Assembly: GCA_009103225.1 (NCBI GenBank)
Contig: RHPI01003156.1
Location: 1 to 17,979 of the forward strand
Direction of reading: 5' to 3'
DNA: 17,979 bases
From: Chlorokybus atmophyticus
Lineage: Eukaryota > Plantae > Mesostigma and Chlorokybus algae
Shown here: one piece after another, positions 2,093 to 17,700 of the stretch
How positions within the stretch are numbered: the stretch's first letter is position 1
Layout: every line of letters begins with the position of its first letter
Notes under the pieces: generated by a model
The model's database searches: none
What the model was told of the DNA's origin: nothing
What the model saw: only the letters and a program-made list of their open reading frames with translations
Position numbers and translations under genes: made by a program

Positions 2093-2465
2093 ATAACATT
2101 CACAAATGCTTGACTATAACATATTCTCAGTGAATGGTCTATTGTCATTAACTTGTTGTATAGAATTATAGCCTTTGTAATGCAAAGCTCTTACACATAT
2201 CTGTATCAAGATGTCGCTTGTGTAGTTTTGAATGATTAACATTGAGTTAACTGAACCTCAAAATATTTACTATCGTTCAAGTTCTTGTTCTTTGTTCGTT
2301 CGCACATGCCCAAACCTAGGTTCGGCCCCAGCCCTATTTGTCATGGTAACGCCACCCTCATCAGAACAGTCTCGAGACAGGTGGCCTACAGCAGTGACAG
2401 AAACATTAGCCCTACATCAATTCACCAGGCTAACAGGTGGCCCAGTTTGCGCCACGTTGGCGAGC

Positions 2466-6295
<3,830 letters not shown>

Positions 6296-6407
6296 TGCCA
6301 ATCACCCCTTTGCTTGCACTCCCTCATTGCTCTGCACATTCTTTTGCTGCGACTGCATTCAGTCATATCACAGCACATTGTGAGCACCACAAACAGCAAA
6401 GCTTGCA

Positions 6408-6412
6408 TGTAA
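6408..6412 (+). terminator. Possible TGTAA polyadenylation signal for NTRC (second copy at 6518-6522)
   Basis: TGTAA is the known chlorophyte poly(A) signal and lies 113 nt after the stop. It is only a 5-mer and the lineage is not established. Confidence 0.3.
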
Positions 6413-7257
6413 CGTCCCCTCTAGTTGTACTGGCAACTGATTGCATGCGGCAGCAAATCATTTGCCCATCAATGAGTGCCTGGTCCAGGAAATGCGCCAC
6501 CGGTGGTGTGCTGGTGGTGTAAGTGTGGCCTCCAGGCGCATCTCACCTACTCGGGAGTGCAGATGGCATGCATTGCGCTGTGGAAGCTATTGCGCAAAGC
6601 TCACGTTTGCTCGCACGAGCTGCAAGCATCTTGACGTTCATGCATTGTGTACATAGTTGGTGCAAGTGATCATGAGTAAATGCACTAATTGTCAGCATGC
6701 CAGCCCTCTCAGAAGCTGTCATTGAACCATTGGGCTATAAAGCTAGGGATTACCTAAGCTACTGCACTATTGCCACTAACCTTACCTTGCCAGGCCAACA
6801 TGCAAGCACCTCAATCATCGCTTGCGCATGTGCCACACTTGGTGGGTGCTGTTTTGTTATCCTTCTTCCACGAAGTCAGTCATCATATTTGACGATCTCG
6901 TCACAGCCAGCTGATGCTTGCACAATAAATTCACCATAGGTTCTGAGCCTTGCAGCAGTGAGCAAGCGGCACTGACTAGGTGCAACAAATTTTCCTGTGA
7001 GTCAACCAAGCATGTCATAAACAACCCTACAACTGCTTACTTCTATGTACTTGTCGAAAAGTCTCAATAAACACGCTCAGTGATTGTACACTAGGCTGCA
7101 GCCAATATCTTCTCCAATCTTGATACTAACCTCAAATTGATAACTATACAAAAACTGCACAAAAACTGTGGAAAGTTAGTGCCAACCACCGTTCTACCAT
7201 GCGTGTATGCAAAGCCATGTTGCAATCAGGCCATGATCACAGATGTTGGCCAACACA

Positions 7258-8666
7258 TCAACCTGCAGGTGCTCGCCAATTGCTGCTTTTGTGCGTGCGT
7301 TTGCGCGCGGTCACCAAACACGAAACCTCCCGCCCTCTTTTTGCCGCCATCTCAAGCGCCATACCCAAACATCTTCCAATCCCACGCGCCGTGCTCACAT
7401 CAGCCCAACCTGCATCACACAATAACCCACAGCATTGAGACCACAATACAGTCTCTGCTACTGCTTCAGGTGACATAGCATCTGCTTACATGGTCCACAT
7501 GCTGCACTGATACTATGCACCCTCCCTACTGATACACACATATGGGCGCTCATGTGTGCACTAATATGGTGTGCATGTGTGCATGTGCGCGTATGCAACT
7601 TAGACAACGCGCACCACGCAAGTTCTTGTCTTCATACAAACCCGGCATGCACATCTGAACAACATACCGTCAAACACAACAGACTCACCAATTGTGCTCG
7701 GGGGGGGTGCTTGCGCGAGGGCTGCCTTGAAAGGGCTGCAACGCCGCGGTTTCTTCGGCCTCGGCAGGGAGCCCAGCACCGCCGGAAATGTTTCAAACCA
7801 GTCATCAACACTTTGGTAGTAACTCTCGTCGTCAAGCCGTGAGAAGTCAAAGTACTTGGGCGCATCGAACTCGTATAATGGGTCGTAATAAGGTGTCTGG
7901 CATAAGGCCGCACACGTTCCACACATCAGTCCATTGCAAGGTACAGTGTATCACCCGCACAGTTGCTGACCATTGCACCACATACACTGCTGCATCATGT
8001 ACATGAGCTATGATAGTCTTGGTGACGAGAATGGCAATGACAACCAGGAAGTTAGCGAATAAGGTGCGGGCTCTGACGTCAAAACCTTAGACCTCATCAC
8101 CAAGGGACTGGAACAAACAGGCAATACCAGCTTGTCTTCATCATGGTAAACTGGTGTTGACAATTCATACTAGAGAACACATAAGGAAACAGGAACAGCA
8201 GTGAACCAACATGCTGTTGCAGCAAGCTGCGAAACCATTGGAGTCTTGCTTATATGGCGGGTAGAAGCAAAGAACAACCCTAATGCCGCAAGATGGCATG
8301 TCTGTTAATCTATCTGCCATTCAAACCCCACCACATGTTGCCCGATGCGCACATACTGCCGCTGCAGGTGATGTTGTACACTAAGAGTTCATCCACTCAT
8401 TCTGACTCTACCACCGTTCTAGGTCTAGACTGGACGCACGCACGACCAGGCCAGACCAGACCAGCAAAGCGAGCAATGCGAGAAAAAATTCCAGCGCCCC
8501 CCTCCCCTGTCCCTCCGCCCCTCACCTCAGCGCCGCCGTCGCTCCTATCAATGCTGTTAAAGTCAGCGCCACTCGTCACCACGTACGTCGGGCCTGTGAC
8601 GTCGCCCATGTCGTCGATGCCGCCGCCGCCAATGCCGCCGCCACCTGGAAGGTGCGGCTGCAGCAT
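7258..8666 (-). CDS. Short protein (~166 aa) with a TPX2-type Aurora-kinase-binding motif (TPX2/TPXL-like)
   Basis: Model: exon 1 8666-8526 (MLQPHLPGGGG...DGGAE, donor GTGAGG), exon 2 7896-7689 (acceptor GCCAG; TPYYDPLYEFDAPKYFDFSRLDDESYYQSVDDWFE...CSPFKAAL...; donor GTGAGT), exon 3 7409-7258 (acceptor TGCAG; only the phase-compatible frame is open; TGA). Total 501 nt. Exon 2 matches the TPX2 N-terminal Aurora-binding motif. Exons 1 and 3 are less certain than exon 2. Confidence 0.7.
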
Positions 8667-8751
8667 GGATATCGACACCCGAGACTGGGATTGCCTGGCC
8701 TAAACGCGGATATCTGTAAGTCCCCGCGTTTTTGGTTCCCGCGCAGGCTGA

Positions 8752-8786
8752 TTCAAATTGAACCGTAGGATTCGGCGCGTGCCGTT
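8752..8786 (-). promoter_or_regulatory. CHR-like (TTTGAA, 8757-8752) and MSA-core (AACGG, 8786-8782) motifs upstream of the TPX2-like gene
   Basis: Both motifs are present 86-120 nt upstream of ATG 8666 and fit a G2/M gene, but they are short enough to occur by chance. Confidence 0.3.
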
Positions 8787-8817
8787 TGTATGTTGTATGA
8801 GTTGTGCGGGTGCGTCA

Positions 8818-8872
8818 CATCCACATGAAAGGATGCGATCAAATCGTTTTATCGCATCCTTTCATGTGGATG
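8818..8872. repeat. Perfect 22-bp inverted repeat with 11-nt spacer
   Basis: CATCCACATGAAAGGATGCGAT (8818-8839) is the exact reverse complement of ATCGCATCCTTTCATGTGGATG (8851-8872). The spacer CAAATCGTTTT can add an AAA/TTT pairing. Confidence 0.95.
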
Positions 8873-9112
8873 CGGTCAAACTTGTTGTAGGGTGTGTGGA
8901 CCATACTTCGGACGACTTTTTAAGGATAGGTCGTAGCTTACGGCTTGGTGGTCAGTTTAGGGAGGGTAATAGCACGTTGGATAGCTGAGGAGTTGACGGC
9001 CATGATGTGCTTGACGGCACCTCAAACGGATAACTATAGCGTCCTCACCTTCCTGCCAAAGTGCGGGGTGGGTAAAAAGTTCGAAAAATTTAGGTTTGCC
9101 TACCTTTGGACG

Positions 9113-9146
9113 GCCTCAAATGGCTGCTTGGCAGCCATTTGTGGCG
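9113..9146. repeat. Imperfect hairpin
   Basis: GCC-T-CAAATGGCTGC / TTG loop / GCAGCCCATTTG-T-GGC: 14 pairs with one mismatch and one bulge. Confidence 0.7.
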
Positions 9147-9221
9147 GTAAGGTGGCGTCAGACAGGTCTAGGGCTGCGCTGACGTGCTGTGCTGACACTT
9201 GGCTGCATGTCACGGCCGGAA

Positions 9222-9250
9222 AACCCCCAAACCCTAGTGGTTTGGGGGTT
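9222..9250. repeat. Perfect 12-bp hairpin with CTAGT loop
   Basis: AACCCCCAAACC (9222-9233) / CTAGT / GGTTTGGGGGTT (9239-9250). Confidence 0.9.
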
Positions 9251-9721
9251 GTGGGCGGCGAGGTTGCTGGTGGGGTGGTTGTAGTCCGCTGTCCGGAGTG
9301 TGTGTGCGCCCTACACAGGTGGCGCAAAAGGGTCCAGCGACGGCGACGGTGGCCCACTTGGCGCAGGTGCGTGGCTCACCGTTGTGGCTCTTGAGCGCAG
9401 GGAGCACAACTTCATTGTGCTGTCTTGTACCAAGTTGTGTGGTGTGCGTATTTGCTGGGCGGGCAATTGTGTGCAGCTGTGTGGAGGTCTATCTCTGTGC
9501 GTGTGTGTGGTGCGGNAGTTACTGTTGTGCCTAGTTCCTGAGTCTTCAGCAGCATGTTGTGAATTCTGGCTTGCATGGCACTGTGTGGCACTCATTCTAT
9601 GTGGCATGCACAACGTGTTCATGAGGCCAAGGCAGGAGCAGTTAAAGGGAACAAGTGGTGTGTGTGTACAAGGTCTGAAGAGTGCTCTAAGTCAGTAGTG
9701 TACTAACTAGGCTAACTAGGC

Positions 9722-12423
9722 CTACATCATGCGTGACCGCATGGCTGCCTTAAGGTTGAGCAGGGTCCGTGCTGGGCCTGCTGCTGCAGCAACTGAGGCA
9801 TCCACTGCGCGGGTGGCCTCTTGCAGTTCAAAAGGTGTTGGAGATATTGACAAGATGCGGTGTGCTTGTGGGCTGCCAACAGGGCTGGCCATTGGTGACA
9901 GACAGATTAGAGGGCTGTAGCTCAGGTGAGATGGCTCTGCCTGTGTCTCCAGATCAACAATGCATGCTCTGGAACCTGAAGCAGTCTGGATATGAGTTGG
10001 GCCTGCTCGTGCCACTGCCTGCTGCTGTGCTGCCAACTTTTGCTGCTTGGCAGCATCCTTCGCTGCCTTGGCTTGCTGCTTTTGTGCTGCCAACAGTTCC
10101 CTCTCAGACTTGGCTGCCTGCCGCTCCAGCGCTGCTATCTCTTTCTTCTTGGTAGCTTCAACTCGCTTGTTGGCAGCCTCTTGCTTCCTCGCTGCAATCC
10201 CCGCCTTCTTCTGCTCCGCTGCAGCCACCTTTTCTGCCAACATGTTGATGTACCCCTGAGATGTCAGAAGCACAGAGCCTGGCAGCTGCGGAGCTTTCTT
10301 CTGCCTCCACCCCTCCACACCCTCGGTGGGTTGCCTGACTTGGATGTTGATGTTGCCAGATGAAGGCCCTGCCCCGTTATTGATGTTGATGTTGATGCTG
10401 TTGTTGTTGTTCTGGTTGTTGTTGTTGTTATTGTTGTTCTGATTGGTGTTGTGGCTGTTGTGGTTGACTTGAGGCGCTGCAGATGGAGGTGGAGAGCGGT
10501 TTTCCTTCTCGCAGGAACTGTCTTCATCTTCGGTGGCATCTGAGTCCTCGTGATCAGAATGGTGAGGCACACCCTCACCATACAGGGCAGGTCCGCCAAA
10601 CTCATGCTGCACCTGGGCGTGAGCCAGGTCTGGCGTGACTTCATCAGCAGTAGGCTTGGGCATGTCCGGAACACGGTCATCGAGTGCGTGTACGTCCACA
10701 GGCCACACTCCTGCGTGCATGTTGGCATTGATGTTCTATGCGGGATGGTTGAGAGGGCATACGTCCACATGCATTTGCATTTGAACATATGTGCAATCAC
10801 ACCTGTTCTCCTGAAGCCGGAGGTGATGTTGCGTGGGGTCATAGCCAATAGGAATGGCTCGCAAGTCAGCTTCACAAATTGCAGCTTGCTGATGGGTGCG
10901 TTTGGCTCCTCCACTCTCCACGCCAGAAACTCCTTCCGGTAGTGCTCTTTCAAAGGCCGAAAGCAACTCACATCCAACACCTGCCACAGGTAGGCCACAT
11001 TTGCATTGTTTACTACCGCAAATCATATGCATGTGCACAACAACTGAACAGCATGCACGTGCAGTCAACTGACTGACCTGCATGAGGTGTGTCATGTGAG
11101 GAGGAAAGGTCAACATGTGCACACCGGCCGTCCTGGCCTGCTCCAGCAGCTCCGGGTTCATACGGGAGGAGTGCCCGTCCAACAAAAGCAGCACGGGTTT
11201 GTCTACCGACACCCCTCCAGGTACAAACTCCACAAACTTCTTAAACCAATCGGCAAATATGTCGATGGTCATGTATGCGTTCTCCTGCATGCGCATGAAG
11301 CTTCCATAAGGAGCGACCTTCATGTAGTTCTTTGTATAGCGGGTACCCTTCAAGATGTACATAGGTGGCATCCACATGCCCGCAGCATTGACACAAGCCA
11401 TGACGGACATATGCTCTCGACTTCCGCATTGGTTGTAATAGGGGTTCTTGTAACCCCGGCTGCATATGACCTTGACAGTGCCTGCACAAGCCAATTGTTC
11501 ACATGCTACATGCACGCAATCATAGCTAACACTTGGTCCTTGCAGGACTTACCCAGGTTATCAGGTTCAAAGCCTGTCTCGTCCGCGTTGAAGATCCTAG
11601 TGGGATCATTAATGCCAAGCTCTTCTAACGTTCTTGTATACAACTCAAAGAACGCGTTGACATTATCTCGCGTACAGGCCTGCCACCTCCTGCGATCTAG
11701 TCCTTCAGCAACACGGGAGGCCAGATTGTGGCGTGCCATGAACATGCGAAGCCACTTATAACCAGGTATGCCACGCGGTCCAAAACGCTGCAGGCGCCCA
11801 GTGGGATCACTCCGCAGCATGTGCACAACCTACAGCAAGTGCAACAGGTCATGAGTGGCTTGAACACACATTGCACTTAATAGGGCTCACTGCATCACAA
11901 CAGCACATGCATCACCAGCACGCACATGCACATGCATGCGAATAGCACACACATGCATCCCGAGACAACGATAGTTAATCCAAGTCCTAACCGTTACCTT
12001 CTGGAACAGTGAAGGCCGAGTGACGGCATACTTTTTGTCCGCCATCCAGTTGACCCAAGTGACTAGCTCCTCCTCTTCCTGTGGGGTCAAAACAGGGGAG
12101 CGTCCAGGGCCTCGCGGCAGTTGTAACTTATAAGGGTAGGTCACGTAGTCGTATAGCGTGGAACGTGGCACTCCATATTTGCCAGATGCAATCCTCAGGC
12201 TCATGCCAGCCTTCACTTCCTCCACCGCCACACCCAACTGCAACATCATCCCCTCACCATGGTAGTTCATGTACTGCATGCCCTTGCGACGGGCGCTGCC
12301 AATGCAACTACGCAGGGCTTGCTTGCTGCGACTCTTCACACGCTTGGAAGGGCACGGGGCTAATGGGGTTGATGCTGCTCGCTTGCTCCCGATTGGAGTG
12401 CTCTCCTGCAAACAAATCCACAT
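9722..12423 (-). CDS. pogo-family (Fot/Fot-like, DD35D) transposase, copy 1, intron-containing, about 750 aa
   Basis: Exons 12405(or ATG 12423)-11998, 11829-11553, 11481-11078, 10980-10803, 10710-9722, with GT-AG introns of 168, 71, 97 and 92 nt; phases are compatible and there are no internal stops. HTH_psq-like GMSLRIASGKYGVPRSTLYDYV; CENP-B-type HTH GRSPVLTPQEEEELVTWV...GYKWLRMFMARH; catalytic IFNADETG (D 11583-11581), LLLLDGHSS (D 11179-11177), MQVLDVSCFRPLK (D 10974-10972) with 35 residues between D2 and D3; GFRRTGVWP. The true start codon is uncertain. Confidence 0.9.
10400..10441 (-). repeat. (AAC)n-type repeat encoding an Asn-rich tract in the transposase tail
   Basis: QNNNNNNNNQNNNNS in exon 5; identical at +5277 in copy 2. 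Confidence 0.85.
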
Positions 12424-12702
12424 ATGCTAAGGGGGGCAAGGATGACAAGGTGCACAATCAAACAGCGCCTAAGCTGCCTAACCACCAGCTCTAAGTCCCC
12501 ACCAGGCCGCCACCCTAGCAGATAGCATAGACAGCATAGTGTGTATAGCATAGAATGCATAGACAGCGCAGGCAGACATCCCTCTACTTTAATGCATCTC
12601 CACAACCTGCATAGACAGTATATCTCATTGTCGTGCGTGTCTTGGGTGGTGGTTGCCCGTGTGCCCACCATCGCTCTCTCCACCCAAAACTATGCCCCCC
12701 CC

Positions 12703-13674
12703 NNNNNNNNNNNNNNNNNNNNNNNNNNNNNNNNNNNNNNNNNNNNNNNNNNNNNNNNNNNNNNNNNNNNNNNNNNNNNNNNNNNNNNNNNNNNNNNNNN
12801 NNNNNNNNNNNNNNNNNNNNNNNNNNNNNNNNNNNNNNNNNNNNNNNNNNNNNNNNNNNNNNNNNNNNNNNNNNNNNNNNNNNNNNNNNNNNNNNNNNNN
12901 NNNNNNNNNNNNNNNNNNNNNNNNNNNNNNNNNNNNNNNNNNNNNNNNNNNNNNNNNNNNNNNNNNNNNNNNNNNNNNNNNNNNNNNNNNNNNNNNNNNN
13001 NNNNNNNNNNNNNNNNNNNNNNNNNNNNNNNNNNNNNNNNNNNNNNNNNNNNNNNNNNNNNNNNNNNNNNNNNNNNNNNNNNNNNNNNNNNNNNNNNNNN
13101 NNNNNNNNNNNNNNNNNNNNNNNNNNNNNNNNNNNNNNNNNNNNNNNNNNNNNNNNNNNNNNNNNNNNNNNNNNNNNNNNNNNNNNNNNNNNNNNNNNNN
13201 NNNNNNNNNNNNNNNNNNNNNNNNNNNNNNNNNNNNNNNNNNNNNNNNNNNNNNNNNNNNNNNNNNNNNNNNNNNNNNNNNNNNNNNNNNNNNNNNNNNN
13301 NNNNNNNNNNNNNNNNNNNNNNNNNNNNNNNNNNNNNNNNNNNNNNNNNNNNNNNNNNNNNNNNNNNNNNNNNNNNNNNNNNNNNNNNNNNNNNNNNNNN
13401 NNNNNNNNNNNNNNNNNNNNNNNNNNNNNNNNNNNNNNNNNNNNNNNNNNNNNNNNNNNNNNNNNNNNNNNNNNNNNNNNNNNNNNNNNNNNNNNNNNNN
13501 NNNNNNNNNNNNNNNNNNNNNNNNNNNNNNNNNNNNNNNNNNNNNNNNNNNNNNNNNNNNNNNNNNNNNNNNNNNNNNNNNNNNNNNNNNNNNNNNNNNN
13601 NNNNNNNNNNNNNNNNNNNNNNNNNNNNNNNNNNNNNNNNNNNNNNNNNNNNNNNNNNNNNNNNNNNNNNNNNN
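12703..13674. other. Assembly gap (972 N), flanked by C8 on both sides
   Basis: N run; C8 at 12695-12702 and 13675-13682. Confidence 1.
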
Positions 13675-13689
13675 CCCCCCCCAATAAAT

Positions 13690-13722: not shown

Positions 13723-14651
13723 TATTTGAGCAAATACAAAAGTGATACTATTGATTTGTTTAAAAATGCCTATTTGTGGAAGTGTCGACTGTCACACGAT
13801 CATGTGATGGGTCAGCGTATAGTTGCATGAAATGTGATAGCTTCCTTGCTGCCACGACAACAAGCCTATACTGTTTATTGTAAACGCAACGGAGACAGAC
13901 ACAGACTTATATGGAACTCTGTACTTACAGTTATTTGATACCGTCATGACCTTTTCATAAGATTGTGTGGCTGTCTTAGATAGTTATCGATGTCTTCAAT
14001 AGCTCATTAGCAGGCTGATCTATGTTTGACGTGAGCCTATTATGGCATTGTGTGCAAATGTAGATTCTTTCTCTCTCTCATTTGCTCGCAGCAAGAGACA
14101 TACACCTTCACGACCATAATTACATACATAGTCTACCCCATACTTGAATTGACTTGGGCATGTGGTAGTGGGCAATGCAAGCTACGGCATTTTATGACGC
14201 TCCACTAGTGCTTGTCAGTCATGTAATGACGCTGTTATTACATATTCATACAAATGACTTTAAGTGTGATTGTTGGCAACTTGACGAGCAAGATGGGACA
14301 ACAATGATAGCCTTTCACTTACAACGCGTATGCTGAGAGCTAGCCTCTGCCTATCAACAATTCAATATCTCCTTGCAAACTACTACGGTATGCTGTCTAC
14401 TTTATGCGCATGCACAACACGCGACGCCGCTTTCCCTCAAGGACCCAGCAATGTATACTACAAAGATGATGTTTGCGCGCTTGCTTGAAGACGCATTTTA
14501 TTGTACAGCAAGTAGGTCGCGGCGGCAGAGCGGGCATCGAGGCCTCGGTTGGCACATGACGCGGACACCACATGGCCTGCAAGCAAATGTCATTTATCAG
14601 AAGTTATATGTACGTGTCTGCATATGCATGCACATGTGCACTCGCCCGTGT

Positions 14652-14662
14652 GCGCGCGCGCG

Positions 14663-14720
<58 letters not shown>
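14652..14720. repeat. Compound microsatellite (GC)13 followed by (AG)21, truncated by the gap
   Basis: Alternating GC at 14652-14678 and AG repeat at 14679-14720. Confidence 0.95.
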
Positions 14721-15382
14721 NNNNNNNNNNNNNNNNNNNNNNNNNNNNNNNNNNNNNNNNNNNNNNNNNNNNNNNNNNNNNNNNNNNNNNNNNNNNNNNN
14801 NNNNNNNNNNNNNNNNNNNNNNNNNNNNNNNNNNNNNNNNNNNNNNNNNNNNNNNNNNNNNNNNNNNNNNNNNNNNNNNNNNNNNNNNNNNNNNNNNNNN
14901 NNNNNNNNNNNNNNNNNNNNNNNNNNNNNNNNNNNNNNNNNNNNNNNNNNNNNNNNNNNNNNNNNNNNNNNNNNNNNNNNNNNNNNNNNNNNNNNNNNNN
15001 NNNNNNNNNNNNNNNNNNNNNNNNNNNNNNNNNNNNNNNNNNNNNNNNNNNNNNNNNNNNNNNNNNNNNNNNNNNNNNNNNNNNNNNNNNNNNNNNNNNN
15101 NNNNNNNNNNNNNNNNNNNNNNNNNNNNNNNNNNNNNNNNNNNNNNNNNNNNNNNNNNNNNNNNNNNNNNNNNNNNNNNNNNNNNNNNNNNNNNNNNNNN
15201 NNNNNNNNNNNNNNNNNNNNNNNNNNNNNNNNNNNNNNNNNNNNNNNNNNNNNNNNNNNNNNNNNNNNNNNNNNNNNNNNNNNNNNNNNNNNNNNNNNNN
15301 NNNNNNNNNNNNNNNNNNNNNNNNNNNNNNNNNNNNNNNNNNNNNNNNNNNNNNNNNNNNNNNNNNNNNNNNNNNNNNNNNN
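14721..15382. other. Assembly gap (662 N)
   Basis: N run. Confidence 1.
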
Positions 15383-17700
15383 AGACTTGGCTGCCTGCCG
15401 CTCCAGCGCTGCTATCTCTTTCTTCTTGGTAGCTTCAACTCGCTTGTTGGCAGCCTCTTGCTTCCTCGCTGCAATCCCCGCCTTCTTCTGCTCCGCTGCA
15501 GCCACCTTTTCTGCCAACATGTTGATGTACCCCTGAGATGTCAGAAGCACAGAGCCTGGCAGCTGCGGAGCTTTCTTCTGCCTCCACCCCTCCACACCCT
15601 CGGTGGGTTGCCTGACTTGGATGTTGATGTTGCCAGATGAAGGCCCTGCCCCGTTATTGATGTTGATGTTGATGCTGTTGTTGTTGTTCTGGTTGTTGTT
15701 GTTGTTATTGTTGTTCTGATTGGTGTTGTGGCTGTTGTGGTTGACTTGAGGCGCTGCAGATGGAGGTGGAGAGCGGTTTTCCTTCTCGCAGGAACTGTCT
15801 TCATCTTCGGTGGCATCTGAGTCCTCGTGATCAGAATGGTGAGGCACACCCTTACCATACAGGGCAGGTCCGCCAAACTCATGCTGCACCTGGGCGTGAG
15901 CCAGGTCTGGCGTGACTTCATCAGCAGTAGGCTTGGGCATGTCCGGAACACGGTCATCGAGTGCGTGTACGTCCACAGGCCACACTCCTGCGTGCATGTT
16001 GGCATTGATGTTCTATGCGGGATGGTTGAGAGGGCATACGTCCACATGCATTTGCATTTGAACATATGTGCAATCACACCTGTTCTCCTGAAGCCGGAGG
16101 TGATGTTGCGTGGGGTCATAGCCAATAGGAATGGCACGCAAGTCAGCTTCACAAATTGCAGCTTGCTGATGGGTGCGTTTGGCTCCTCCACTCTCCACGC
16201 CAGAAACTCCTTCCGGTAGTGCTCTTTCAAAGGCCGAAAGCAACTCACATCCAACACCTGCCACAGGTAGGCCAGATTTGCATTGTTTACTACCGCAAAT
16301 CATATGCATGTGCACAACAACTGAACAGCATGCACGTGCAGTCAATTGACTGACCTGCATGAGGTGTGTCATGTGAGGAGGAAAGGTCAACATGTGCACA
16401 CCGGCCGTCCTGGCCTGCTCCAGCAGCTCCGGGTTCATACGGGAGGAGTGCCCATCCAACAAAAGCAGCACGGGTTTGTCTACCGACACCCCTCCAGGTA
16501 CAAACTCCACAAACTTCTTAAACCAATCGGCAAATATGTCGATGGTCATGTATGCGTTCTCCTGCATGCGCATGAAGCTTCCATAAGGAGCGACCTTCAT
16601 GTAGTTCTTTGTATAGCGGGTACCCTTCAAGATGTACATAGGTGGCATCCACATGCCCGCAGCATTGACACAAGCCATGACGGACATATGCTCTCGACTT
16701 CCGCATTGGTTGTAATAGGGGTTCTTGTAACCCCGGCTGCAAATGACCTTGACAGTGCCTGCACAAGCCAATTGTTCACATGCTACATGCACGCAATCAT
16801 AGCTAACACTTGGTCCTTGCAGGACTTACCCAGGTTATCAGGTTCAAAGCCTGTCTCGTCCGCGTTGAAGATCCTAGTGGGATCATTAATGCCAAGCTCT
16901 TCTAACGTTCTTGTATACAACTCAAAGAACGCGTTGACATTATCTCGCGTACAGGCCTGCCACCTCCTGCGATCTAGTCCTTCAGCAACACGGGAGGCCA
17001 GATTGTGGCGTGCCATGAACATGCGAAGCCACTTATAACCAGGTATGCCACGCGGTCCAAAACGCTGCAGGCGCCCAGTGGGATCACTCCGCAGCATGTG
17101 CACAACCTACAGCAAGTGCAACAGGTCATGAGTGGCTTGAACACACATTGCACTTAATAGGGCTCACTGCATCACAACAGCACATGCATCACCAGCACGC
17201 ACATGCACATGCATGCGAATAGCACACACATGCATCCCGAGACAACGATAGTTAATCCAAGTCCTAACCGTTACCTTCTGGAACAGTGAAGGCCGAGTGA
17301 CGGCATACTTTTTGTCCGCCATCCAGTTGACCCAAGTGACTAGCTCCTCCTCTTCCTGTGGGGTCAAAACAGGGGAGCGTCCAGGGCCTCGCGGCAGTTG
17401 TAACTTATAAGGGTAGGTCACGTAGTCGTATAGCGTGGAACGTGGCACTCCATATTTGCCAGATGCAATCCTCAGGCTCATGCCAGCCTTCACTTCCTCC
17501 ACCGCCACACCCAACTGCAACATCATCCCCTCACCATGGTAGTTCATGTACTGCATGCCCTTGCGACGGGCGCTGCCAATGCAACTACGCAGGGCTTGCT
17601 TGCTGCGACTCTTCACACGCTTGGAAGGGCACGGGGCTAATGGGGTTGATGCTGCTCGCTTGCTCCCGATTGGAGTGCTCTCCTGCAAACAAATCCACAT
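15383..17700 (-). CDS. pogo-family DD35D transposase, copy 2 (3' end lost in gap)
   Basis: Same exon structure as copy 1 shifted by 5277: 17682(17700)-17275, 17106-16830, 16758-16355, 16257-16080, 15987-gap. Catalytic motifs are intact. Confidence 0.88.

Follow-up and report, generated by a model that had tools for sequence, protein, structure and literature searches.

TPX2 couples the activation of Aurora kinase to spindle microtubules. How far the two functions are separable has been asked repeatedly, on account of Drosophila D-TPX2, the Arabidopsis TPXL proteins and C. elegans TPXL-1. A locus in the alga Chlorokybus atmophyticus raises this question in the green lineage. In the window analysed here (the whole of contig RHPI01003156.1, 17,979 nt, assembly GCA_009103225.1), an initial annotation had proposed a small gene that encodes the Aurora-activating segment of TPX2 and none of its other domains. 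Does the locus specify a stand-alone protein of this kind, or is it one part of a longer TPX2 gene?

The locus contains an expressed three-exon gene on the minus strand (7258-8666), with a coding sequence of 501 nt and a product of 166 aa (Table 1). The coding exons are defined by transcript contigs from two independent studies. We compared positions 5600-9700 of the window (4,101 letters) with Logan contigs from four runs of small size, whose type (RNA) is a guess. Logan contigs are not strand-specific reads, and exact transcript ends and expression levels are beyond their reach. A 735-nt contig from run X1 aligns to 6975-7407, 7687-7896 and 8526-8617, and the gaps between these blocks have CT..AC ends on the plus strand, hence GT..AG ends on the strand of the gene. 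After the cut offset is applied (7407/7687, cut +2), the joints fall at 7409/7689 and 7896/8526. The second joint is also present in run X2, which belongs to a different study and covers 8526-8611 of exon 1 as well as 7080-7376. The ORF at 7600-7926 (minus strand) contains TPYYDPLYEFDAPKYFDFSRLDDESYYQSVDDWFETFPAVLGSLPRPKKPRRCSPFKAALAQAPPPSTIG, with a GTGAGT donor next to it at 7689. The acceptor of exon 3 is the AG at 7411-7410 and its in-frame stop is a TGA. The X1 contig continues unspliced from the acceptor, past this stop, at least as far as position 6975, and the mRNA ends about 280 nt past the stop codon. These are exactly the joints and the stop of the splice model of about 166 aa that had been drawn from the sequence, and the mRNA of the gene was recovered in two independent studies.

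Table 1. Features of the TPX2-like gene, in the order of transcription (positions in the window)
Feature	Position	Strand	Evidence
Approximate 5' UTR	8667..8750	minus	transcript depth; ATG-free; in-frame stop near 8700
Exon 1, coding part: residues 1-47, Gly-rich acidic disordered N-terminus	8526..8666	minus	ATG at 8666; donor GAG/GTGAGG after 8526
Intron 1, 629 nt, GT..AG	7897..8525	minus	joint 7896/8526 in X1 and X2 contigs
Exon 2: residues 48-117, Aurora-binding motif, basic patch and SPFK	7689..7896	minus	contigs, Pfam, PDB alignment
TPX2-type Aurora-binding motif, residues Y50-T83, YYDPLYEFDAPKYFDFSRLDDESYYQSVDDWFET	7789..7890	minus	Pfam PF09041 and PDB alignment
Basic patch PRPKKPRR, residues 92-99, candidate monopartite nuclear localisation or importin-binding signal	7741..7764	minus	sequence
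SPFK, residues 101-104, candidate site, fits the S/T-P-x-K/R CDK consensus	7726..7737	minus	sequence
Intron 2, 279 nt, GT..AG	7410..7688	minus	joint in X1 735-nt contig
Exon 3, coding part: residues 117-166 and TGA stop, basic tail	7258..7409	minus	ORF; Pfam-empty
3' UTR, contiguous with exon 3	6975..7257	minus	X1 contig 6975-7407 joint-free; X2 contig 7080-7376

The 5' end of the gene is set by the genomic sequence together with transcript depth. There is no ATG in 8667-8800 and there is an in-frame TAG near 8700, so the ATG at 8666 is the first AUG. Transcript depth is seen in the bin 8614-8750 and there is none from 8751 upward. Positions 8618-8666, the first 49 nt to be translated, lie outside the gene's own contig, which ends at 8617 because a GGC-rich 32-mer beyond that point is common to another transcript. 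Contigs of about 280 nt in runs X1 and X3 share only this Gly-coding 32-mer (8618-8649) and then diverge from the window; they probably represent a different transcript that also encodes this Gly-rich stretch. Farther upstream, about 150 nt from the ATG and beyond the last transcript-covered bin, is a palindrome (8818-8872; 26 nt, 96% complementary, 3-nt spacer) that could be a promoter element or the remnant of a small inverted-repeat element.

A protein identical in exon 2 was found by word search in EukProt (EP00898, Chlorokybus atmophyticus; JGI Chlat1 model Chrsp23S03659, 173 aa). The gene had therefore already been predicted as a short protein, which carries no name and no Pfam annotation. 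The JGI model differs in taking as donor a GTATGT that lies 21 nt farther downstream than the GTGAGT at 7689, which adds seven residues (ESVVFDG). The difference, at 7668-7689, reflects either alternative use of 5' splice sites or a small annotation error; the X1 transcript contig supports the 166-aa form over the 173-aa form. An exact look-up of the JGI protein on contigs gave no match.

Could the transcript continue into a normal TPX2? The convergent neighbour, on the plus strand at 2400-6482, is an NTRC-type gene, with Pyr_redox_2/Pyr_redox exons and a C-terminal Thioredoxin exon (Pfam). Its transcript is spliced in the same runs, with the last three introns confirmed by contigs, and ends near 6482. 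About 490 uncovered bases separate the two convergent transcripts. Since the NTRC gene bounds the locus, there is no room for further exons of the TPX2-like gene. Splicing onward into exons lying under NTRC was considered and is ruled out by the unspliced contig at 6975-7407 and by the uncovered gap. We also looked in the transcript contigs for splicing from 7689 or from exon 3 into a full-length TPX2 and found none, and the three-exon model stands. Run X3 shows a divergence of about 8-10% in the NTRC exons and a last joint displaced by a single base, and we therefore take this run to come from a diverged relative. On the other side of the TPX2-like gene, the window contains two near-identical tandem pogo-type transposon genes (HTH_psq and DDE_1, interrupted ORFs) at 9722-12423 and 14597-17700, with runs of N (about 12700-13680 and 14720-15380) that separate them and hide parts of them.

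The remaining domains of TPX2 are missing as well. Canonical TPX2 combines the Aurora-binding motif with a TPX2_importin domain and a TPX2/Xklp2 domain. Pfam searches of every exon and ORF and of the JGI protein gave no match to TPX2_importin (PF12214; E up to 10 or 0.1) and none to TPX2/Xklp2 (PF06886), and tblastn with six TPX2-type proteins detected the motif as the sole TPX2 similarity in all 18 kb of the window. Both results agree with the earlier reading that no further TPX2 domain precedes NTRC. Thus, of the three parts of a canonical TPX2, the gene has the Aurora-binding motif and lacks PF12214 and PF06886. The group A TPXL proteins are recognised by the motif together with TPX2_importin (PMC7139753); the Chlorokybus protein has the former and lacks the latter.

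What exon 2 does encode is recognisable by several routes. The peptide YEFDAPKYFDFSRLDDESYYQSVDDWFE, encoded at about 7873-7790 (minus strand) within the ORF at 7600-7926, had been read as TPX2-like, matching the human protein at most key positions with one gap. Pfam assigns exon 2 to Aurora-A_bind (PF09041; 23.0 bits, E 8.6e-5), a score only just above the gathering cut-off of 21, which weighs against the functional reading given below; the 173-aa JGI protein scores 21.8 bits. When exon 2 was compared by phmmer with all PDB chains, the only credible matches were to human TPX2, namely the N-terminal peptides of Aurora-A co-crystals (1OL5, 4C3P, 5LXM and 3E5A; E 1.7e-4, one gap) and the full-length protein (6BJC). 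In a third comparison, five angiosperm TPX2 proteins and one Ambispora protein were run by tblastn against the whole window, and 7744-7896 was the sole region matched, in each case by the part of the query that holds the motif. A BLASTP comparison with Arabidopsis lyrata TPX2 gave a pairwise E of 8e-7, and the match reaches slightly past the WF pair into a P-rich and basic stretch. The structural part of the earlier reading is thus supported, whereas its functional part, a protein that would activate or retarget Aurora independently of microtubules or else a split TPX2, is inferred from conservation of the motif.

The alignment places Chlorokybus residues 54-83 on human TPX2 residues 7-37. Y55 pairs with human Y8, F57 with Y10, D58-A59-P60 with D11-A12-P13, Y62 with F16, F65 with F19, L68-D69-D70-E71 with L22-D23-D24-E25, and W80-F81-E82 with W34-F35-E36. 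The human contact residues Y8, Y10, F16, F19, W34 and F35 are therefore kept or conservatively replaced (Y10 to F, F16 to Y). A59, P60, F65, D78, W80 and F81 are invariant in a second alignment, and the F-to-W spacing is 15 in the human, angiosperm and Chlorokybus sequences. The one-residue-shorter form of the motif, AP-x-x-F-D-F, is the plant type, and it is the form present in Chlorokybus.

A short peptide rich in aromatic and acidic residues might merely resemble the TPX2 motif by chance. The motif is only about 30 residues long, and it scores modestly, at 23 bits in Pfam and E about 1e-4 in PDB. However, three independent comparisons all settle on the TPX2-type N-terminal motif, in register and with the same spacing, and the P-rich and basic stretch that flanks it also resembles plant TPX2. 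We consider a chance resemblance very improbable. As judged by these several independent comparisons, the exon 2 peptide is a genuine TPX2-type Aurora-binding motif, and binding to Aurora is what it predicts.

The rest of the protein offers little else to recognise. The basic patch PRPKKPRR and the SPFK site that had been noticed after the motif are both present (Table 1). The PRPKKPRR stretch aligns loosely, by BLASTP, with the P-S-P-x-x-P-R that follows WF in Arabidopsis lyrata TPX2. The initial annotation had also mentioned an SPF feature in plant TPX2. That feature is real in angiosperm TPX2, where APSPF is conserved and the arrangement is WF-x7-SPF, but the spacing in Chlorokybus is different (WF-x19-SPF); the resemblance is loose because SPF sits 19 residues past WF. 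Pfam found no match in exons 1 and 3. Exon 3 contributes a basic tail of 49 residues (pI 11.3) to a protein of about 17.9 kDa. Third-position GC is 0.77 in exon 1, 0.62 in exon 2 and 0.53, the lowest, in exon 3.

AlphaFold2 (single sequence, monomer, 173-aa JGI model) gave a mean pLDDT of 35 and no fold, a model too poor for a structure-based fold search. It contains only two helices. One, at 131-147 (173-aa numbering) in the exon 3 tail, is weak, with pLDDT about 50. The other, predicted at 73-82, corresponds to the part of human TPX2 that forms a helix when bound to Aurora. A chain predicted to be disordered, with a helix where WF lies, would suit a linear motif that folds on binding, and a meaningless tail would look alike. 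The protein is, on these predictions, intrinsically disordered, and its only recognisable element is the TPX2 N-terminal Aurora-binding motif.

We favor the view, with somewhat more confidence than doubt, that the Chlorokybus protein is a TPX2-derived linear-motif protein that would bind and allosterically activate Aurora without tethering it to microtubules. The model is built on analogy to human TPX2(1-43) and to the N-terminal 100 residues of Arabidopsis TPX2, TPXL2, TPXL3, TPXL4 and TPXL8. N-terminal fragments of 100 residues from all the Arabidopsis TPX2-family members that have the motif activate AUR1 in vitro (PMC7139753; bioRxiv 10.1101/431791), and AUR1 and AUR2 are bound only by the group A members TPXL2/3/4/8 (PMC13606213). 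By this analogy, YEFDAPKYFDF would put hydrophobic side chains (Y55, F57, Y62 and F65) against the N-lobe of Aurora's catalytic domain. The helix that follows, with W80-F81 at its end, would hold the activation segment in its active conformation. We propose that this clamp would activate the kinase allosterically and that, because the protein has no TPX2_importin or TPX2/Xklp2 part, Aurora would be activated or occupied without being tethered to spindle microtubules. PRPKKPRR, which is of the K-K-x-R type, may bind importin-alpha and so place the protein under importin/Ran control, and SPFK may bring control by a CDK.

The same parts could make a natural competitor. A protein that occupies the TPX2 site of Aurora might displace the kinase from microtubule-bound full-length TPX2 or TPXL and act mainly as a regulator of its localisation. 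The docking motif is present and the microtubule-binding part absent, as such a decoy would need, and N-terminal pieces of human TPX2, when overexpressed, cause Aurora A to lose its spindle localisation. However, a decoy requires a second, full-length Chlorokybus TPX2 that has its own Aurora motif, and pure inhibition is unlikely because the same motif contacts both bind and activate. We regard this role as quite unlikely.

A bolder proposal is that TPX2 is split in Chlorokybus, with Aurora activation divorced from the microtubule function. The 166-aa protein would then be a dedicated Aurora activator, possibly under importin/Ran and CDK control, and any TPX2-domain protein of the genome would lack the motif. 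We think this unlikely. If it were true, the green lineage would hold a natural case of a split TPX2, and the protein would be the smallest known natural Aurora activator of its type.

Is the short layout found elsewhere? An exhaustive search with exon 2 against 1.84 billion cluster representatives gave six matches at E 1e-3 or better. The first is the Chlorokybus protein itself, and the second is a Brassica TPX2 model with TPX2_importin. The third is a 572-aa protein of Ambispora leptoticha that has two copies of the motif. The fourth is a short product that proved to be the opening exon of a longer gene; its contig is AT-rich and has an exon encoding PF06886 downstream. The fifth is a short first-exon product from a GC-rich, algal-looking contig. 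The sixth, a repeat protein of 998 aa, was rejected as spurious. The significant relatives are therefore of the TPX2 type, which speaks for the identity of the motif. The Brassica model (Brassica cretica KAF2590339.1, 821 aa) has the N-terminal motif and the importin region twice each and looks like two tandem TPX2 5' halves fused in one gene model. In the Ambispora protein (CAG8655606.1), which is from a glomeromycete, the two Aurora-binding-like motifs are about 200 residues apart (DPLYDFDAPKY...GDSWFD and DPLYNFEAPRW...GDSWFD), and Pfam found neither TPX2_importin nor TPX2 in it.

The fifth match is the nearest among green algae. Its contig is chlorophyte-like (JBEBXW010000965.1, NCBI GCA_040391455.1, 3337-4720). 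Exon 1 encodes MSTATEEAKPVEPYYDERYEFNAPRYYDFTNLEDDKDADKWF, with a GT donor directly after WF, and beyond the donor the coding frame continues in phase into an Ala/Pro-rich ORF, more than 370 residues long and free of Pfam matches, that runs off the contig; the motif thus heads an ORF of more than 400 aa. Searches for stand-alone short relatives led to the same kind of result. A word search among proteins of 59-189 aa returned only the Chlorokybus protein and first-exon fragments of longer genes from plants, animals or algae, and a profile search among proteins of 95-303 aa returned only first-exon fragments, from Salix/Populus-type TPXL genes and similar ones. In every relative inspected, the motif is at the head of a longer protein, and the 166-aa layout has been seen only in Chlorokybus, in one genome.

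These searches are insensitive, and absent matches prove little, since against 1.8 billion proteins a motif of 30 residues attains no more than about 36 bits. The word, exhaustive and profile searches found no orthologue, which is not proof of absence, and neither is the lack of a contig of this gene at 90% likeness or more in run X3, from a related Chlorokybus species. Likewise, the exhaustive search gave no second Chlorokybus match, which for a motif of this length is not evidence of absence. A query with the Brassica TPX2_importin domain returned 572 matches, and the best 120 of the 572 are all angiosperm, a result that is uninformative on Chlorokybus. A feature search of the ESM Atlas gave weak leads, namely small streptophyte clusters (0.89-0.91) and a TPX2_importin cluster (0.86).

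Because the nearest green-algal match has the motif at the start of a protein of more than 400 aa, the short layout may be lineage-specific or it may be a truncated relic. The gene would in the latter case be the 5' end of a full-length TPX2 or TPXL gene, or a partial duplicate of one, that lost its 3' part by a rearrangement, possibly linked to the pogo-like transposons; exon 3 would be unrelated sequence, and the gene would be transcribed without a selected function. Several observations fit. Exon 3 has no detectable homologue or domain, and its low third-position GC would be in keeping with a recent truncation. The two tandem pogo-type elements are only about 1 kb upstream, the motif heads a long protein in the chlorophyte-like contig, and the searches showed the short layout in no other organism, the other short matches being first-exon fragments of longer genes. 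However, the reading frame is intact over three exons with canonical splice sites, the transcript is present in two independent studies, all key residues of the motif are intact, and the exhaustive search turned up no long paralogue in Chlorokybus whose N-terminus is closely similar. On balance we find a relic doubtful, though credible enough to be weighed, and we hold to a linear-motif activator of Aurora as the better account of the gene.

What would such a protein mean? It is not a new kind of system, because the motif and its role are well known. What is new here is a domain-minimal natural form of a TPX2-type protein in the green lineage. We found no paper on TPX2 in Chlorokybus or in other streptophyte algae, and no description of a stand-alone Aurora-motif-only protein in plants or algae, in keeping with the earlier annotation, whose author was aware of no such protein described in algae. 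Chlorokybus belongs to the earliest-diverging streptophyte branch, and the protein would show the plant TPX2/TPXL family at the base of the streptophytes. A natural protein with the activating motif alone would be a clean test case for microtubule-independent activation of Aurora, and at 166 aa it would also serve as a minimal reagent for algal and plant Aurora biochemistry. If it is a lineage-specific truncated relic, the gene is a curiosity of gene annotation only.

Several known proteins share parts of this design. TPXL-1, of about 500 aa, still targets Aurora to spindle microtubules. Functions of TPX2 are split between proteins in Drosophila (D-TPX2) and, disputedly, in C. elegans (TPXL-1) (PMC5080731). 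In TPXL-1, whose homology is disputed, the likeness to TPX2 is confined to the Aurora-binding part, and in D-TPX2 (Ssp1/Mei-38) to the microtubule part (PMC5080731). Both are precedents for split or lost TPX2 functions, but in another kingdom than Chlorokybus.

The closer comparison is with plants. Like canonical TPX2 (human; Arabidopsis AT1G03780; the angiosperm proteins P0007-P0125), the Chlorokybus protein has the N-terminal motif with its key residues and its F-to-W spacing, and with plant TPX2 it has in common the AP-x-x-F-D-F form and a P-rich/basic stretch after WF. However, canonical TPX2 is about 700-800 aa long and contains PF12214 and PF06886. The algae sampled previously have a single canonical TPX2, and in Arabidopsis every protein with the Aurora motif also has TPX2_importin (PMC7139753). 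TPXL2, TPXL3, TPXL4 and TPXL8 of Arabidopsis have kept the motif and lost the C-terminal kinesin-5/Xklp2 part (PMC7139753; 10.1101/431791), as in Chlorokybus. In contrast to the Chlorokybus protein, which lacks the domain and is several times shorter, they retain TPX2_importin and bind microtubules (PMC7139753; PMC13606213). A further counterpart is human TPX2(1-43) (1OL5, 4C3P), the minimal peptide crystallographically bound to Aurora A, to whose residues 7-37 the algal motif aligns. That peptide is an engineered laboratory fragment, whereas the Chlorokybus protein is a natural gene product.
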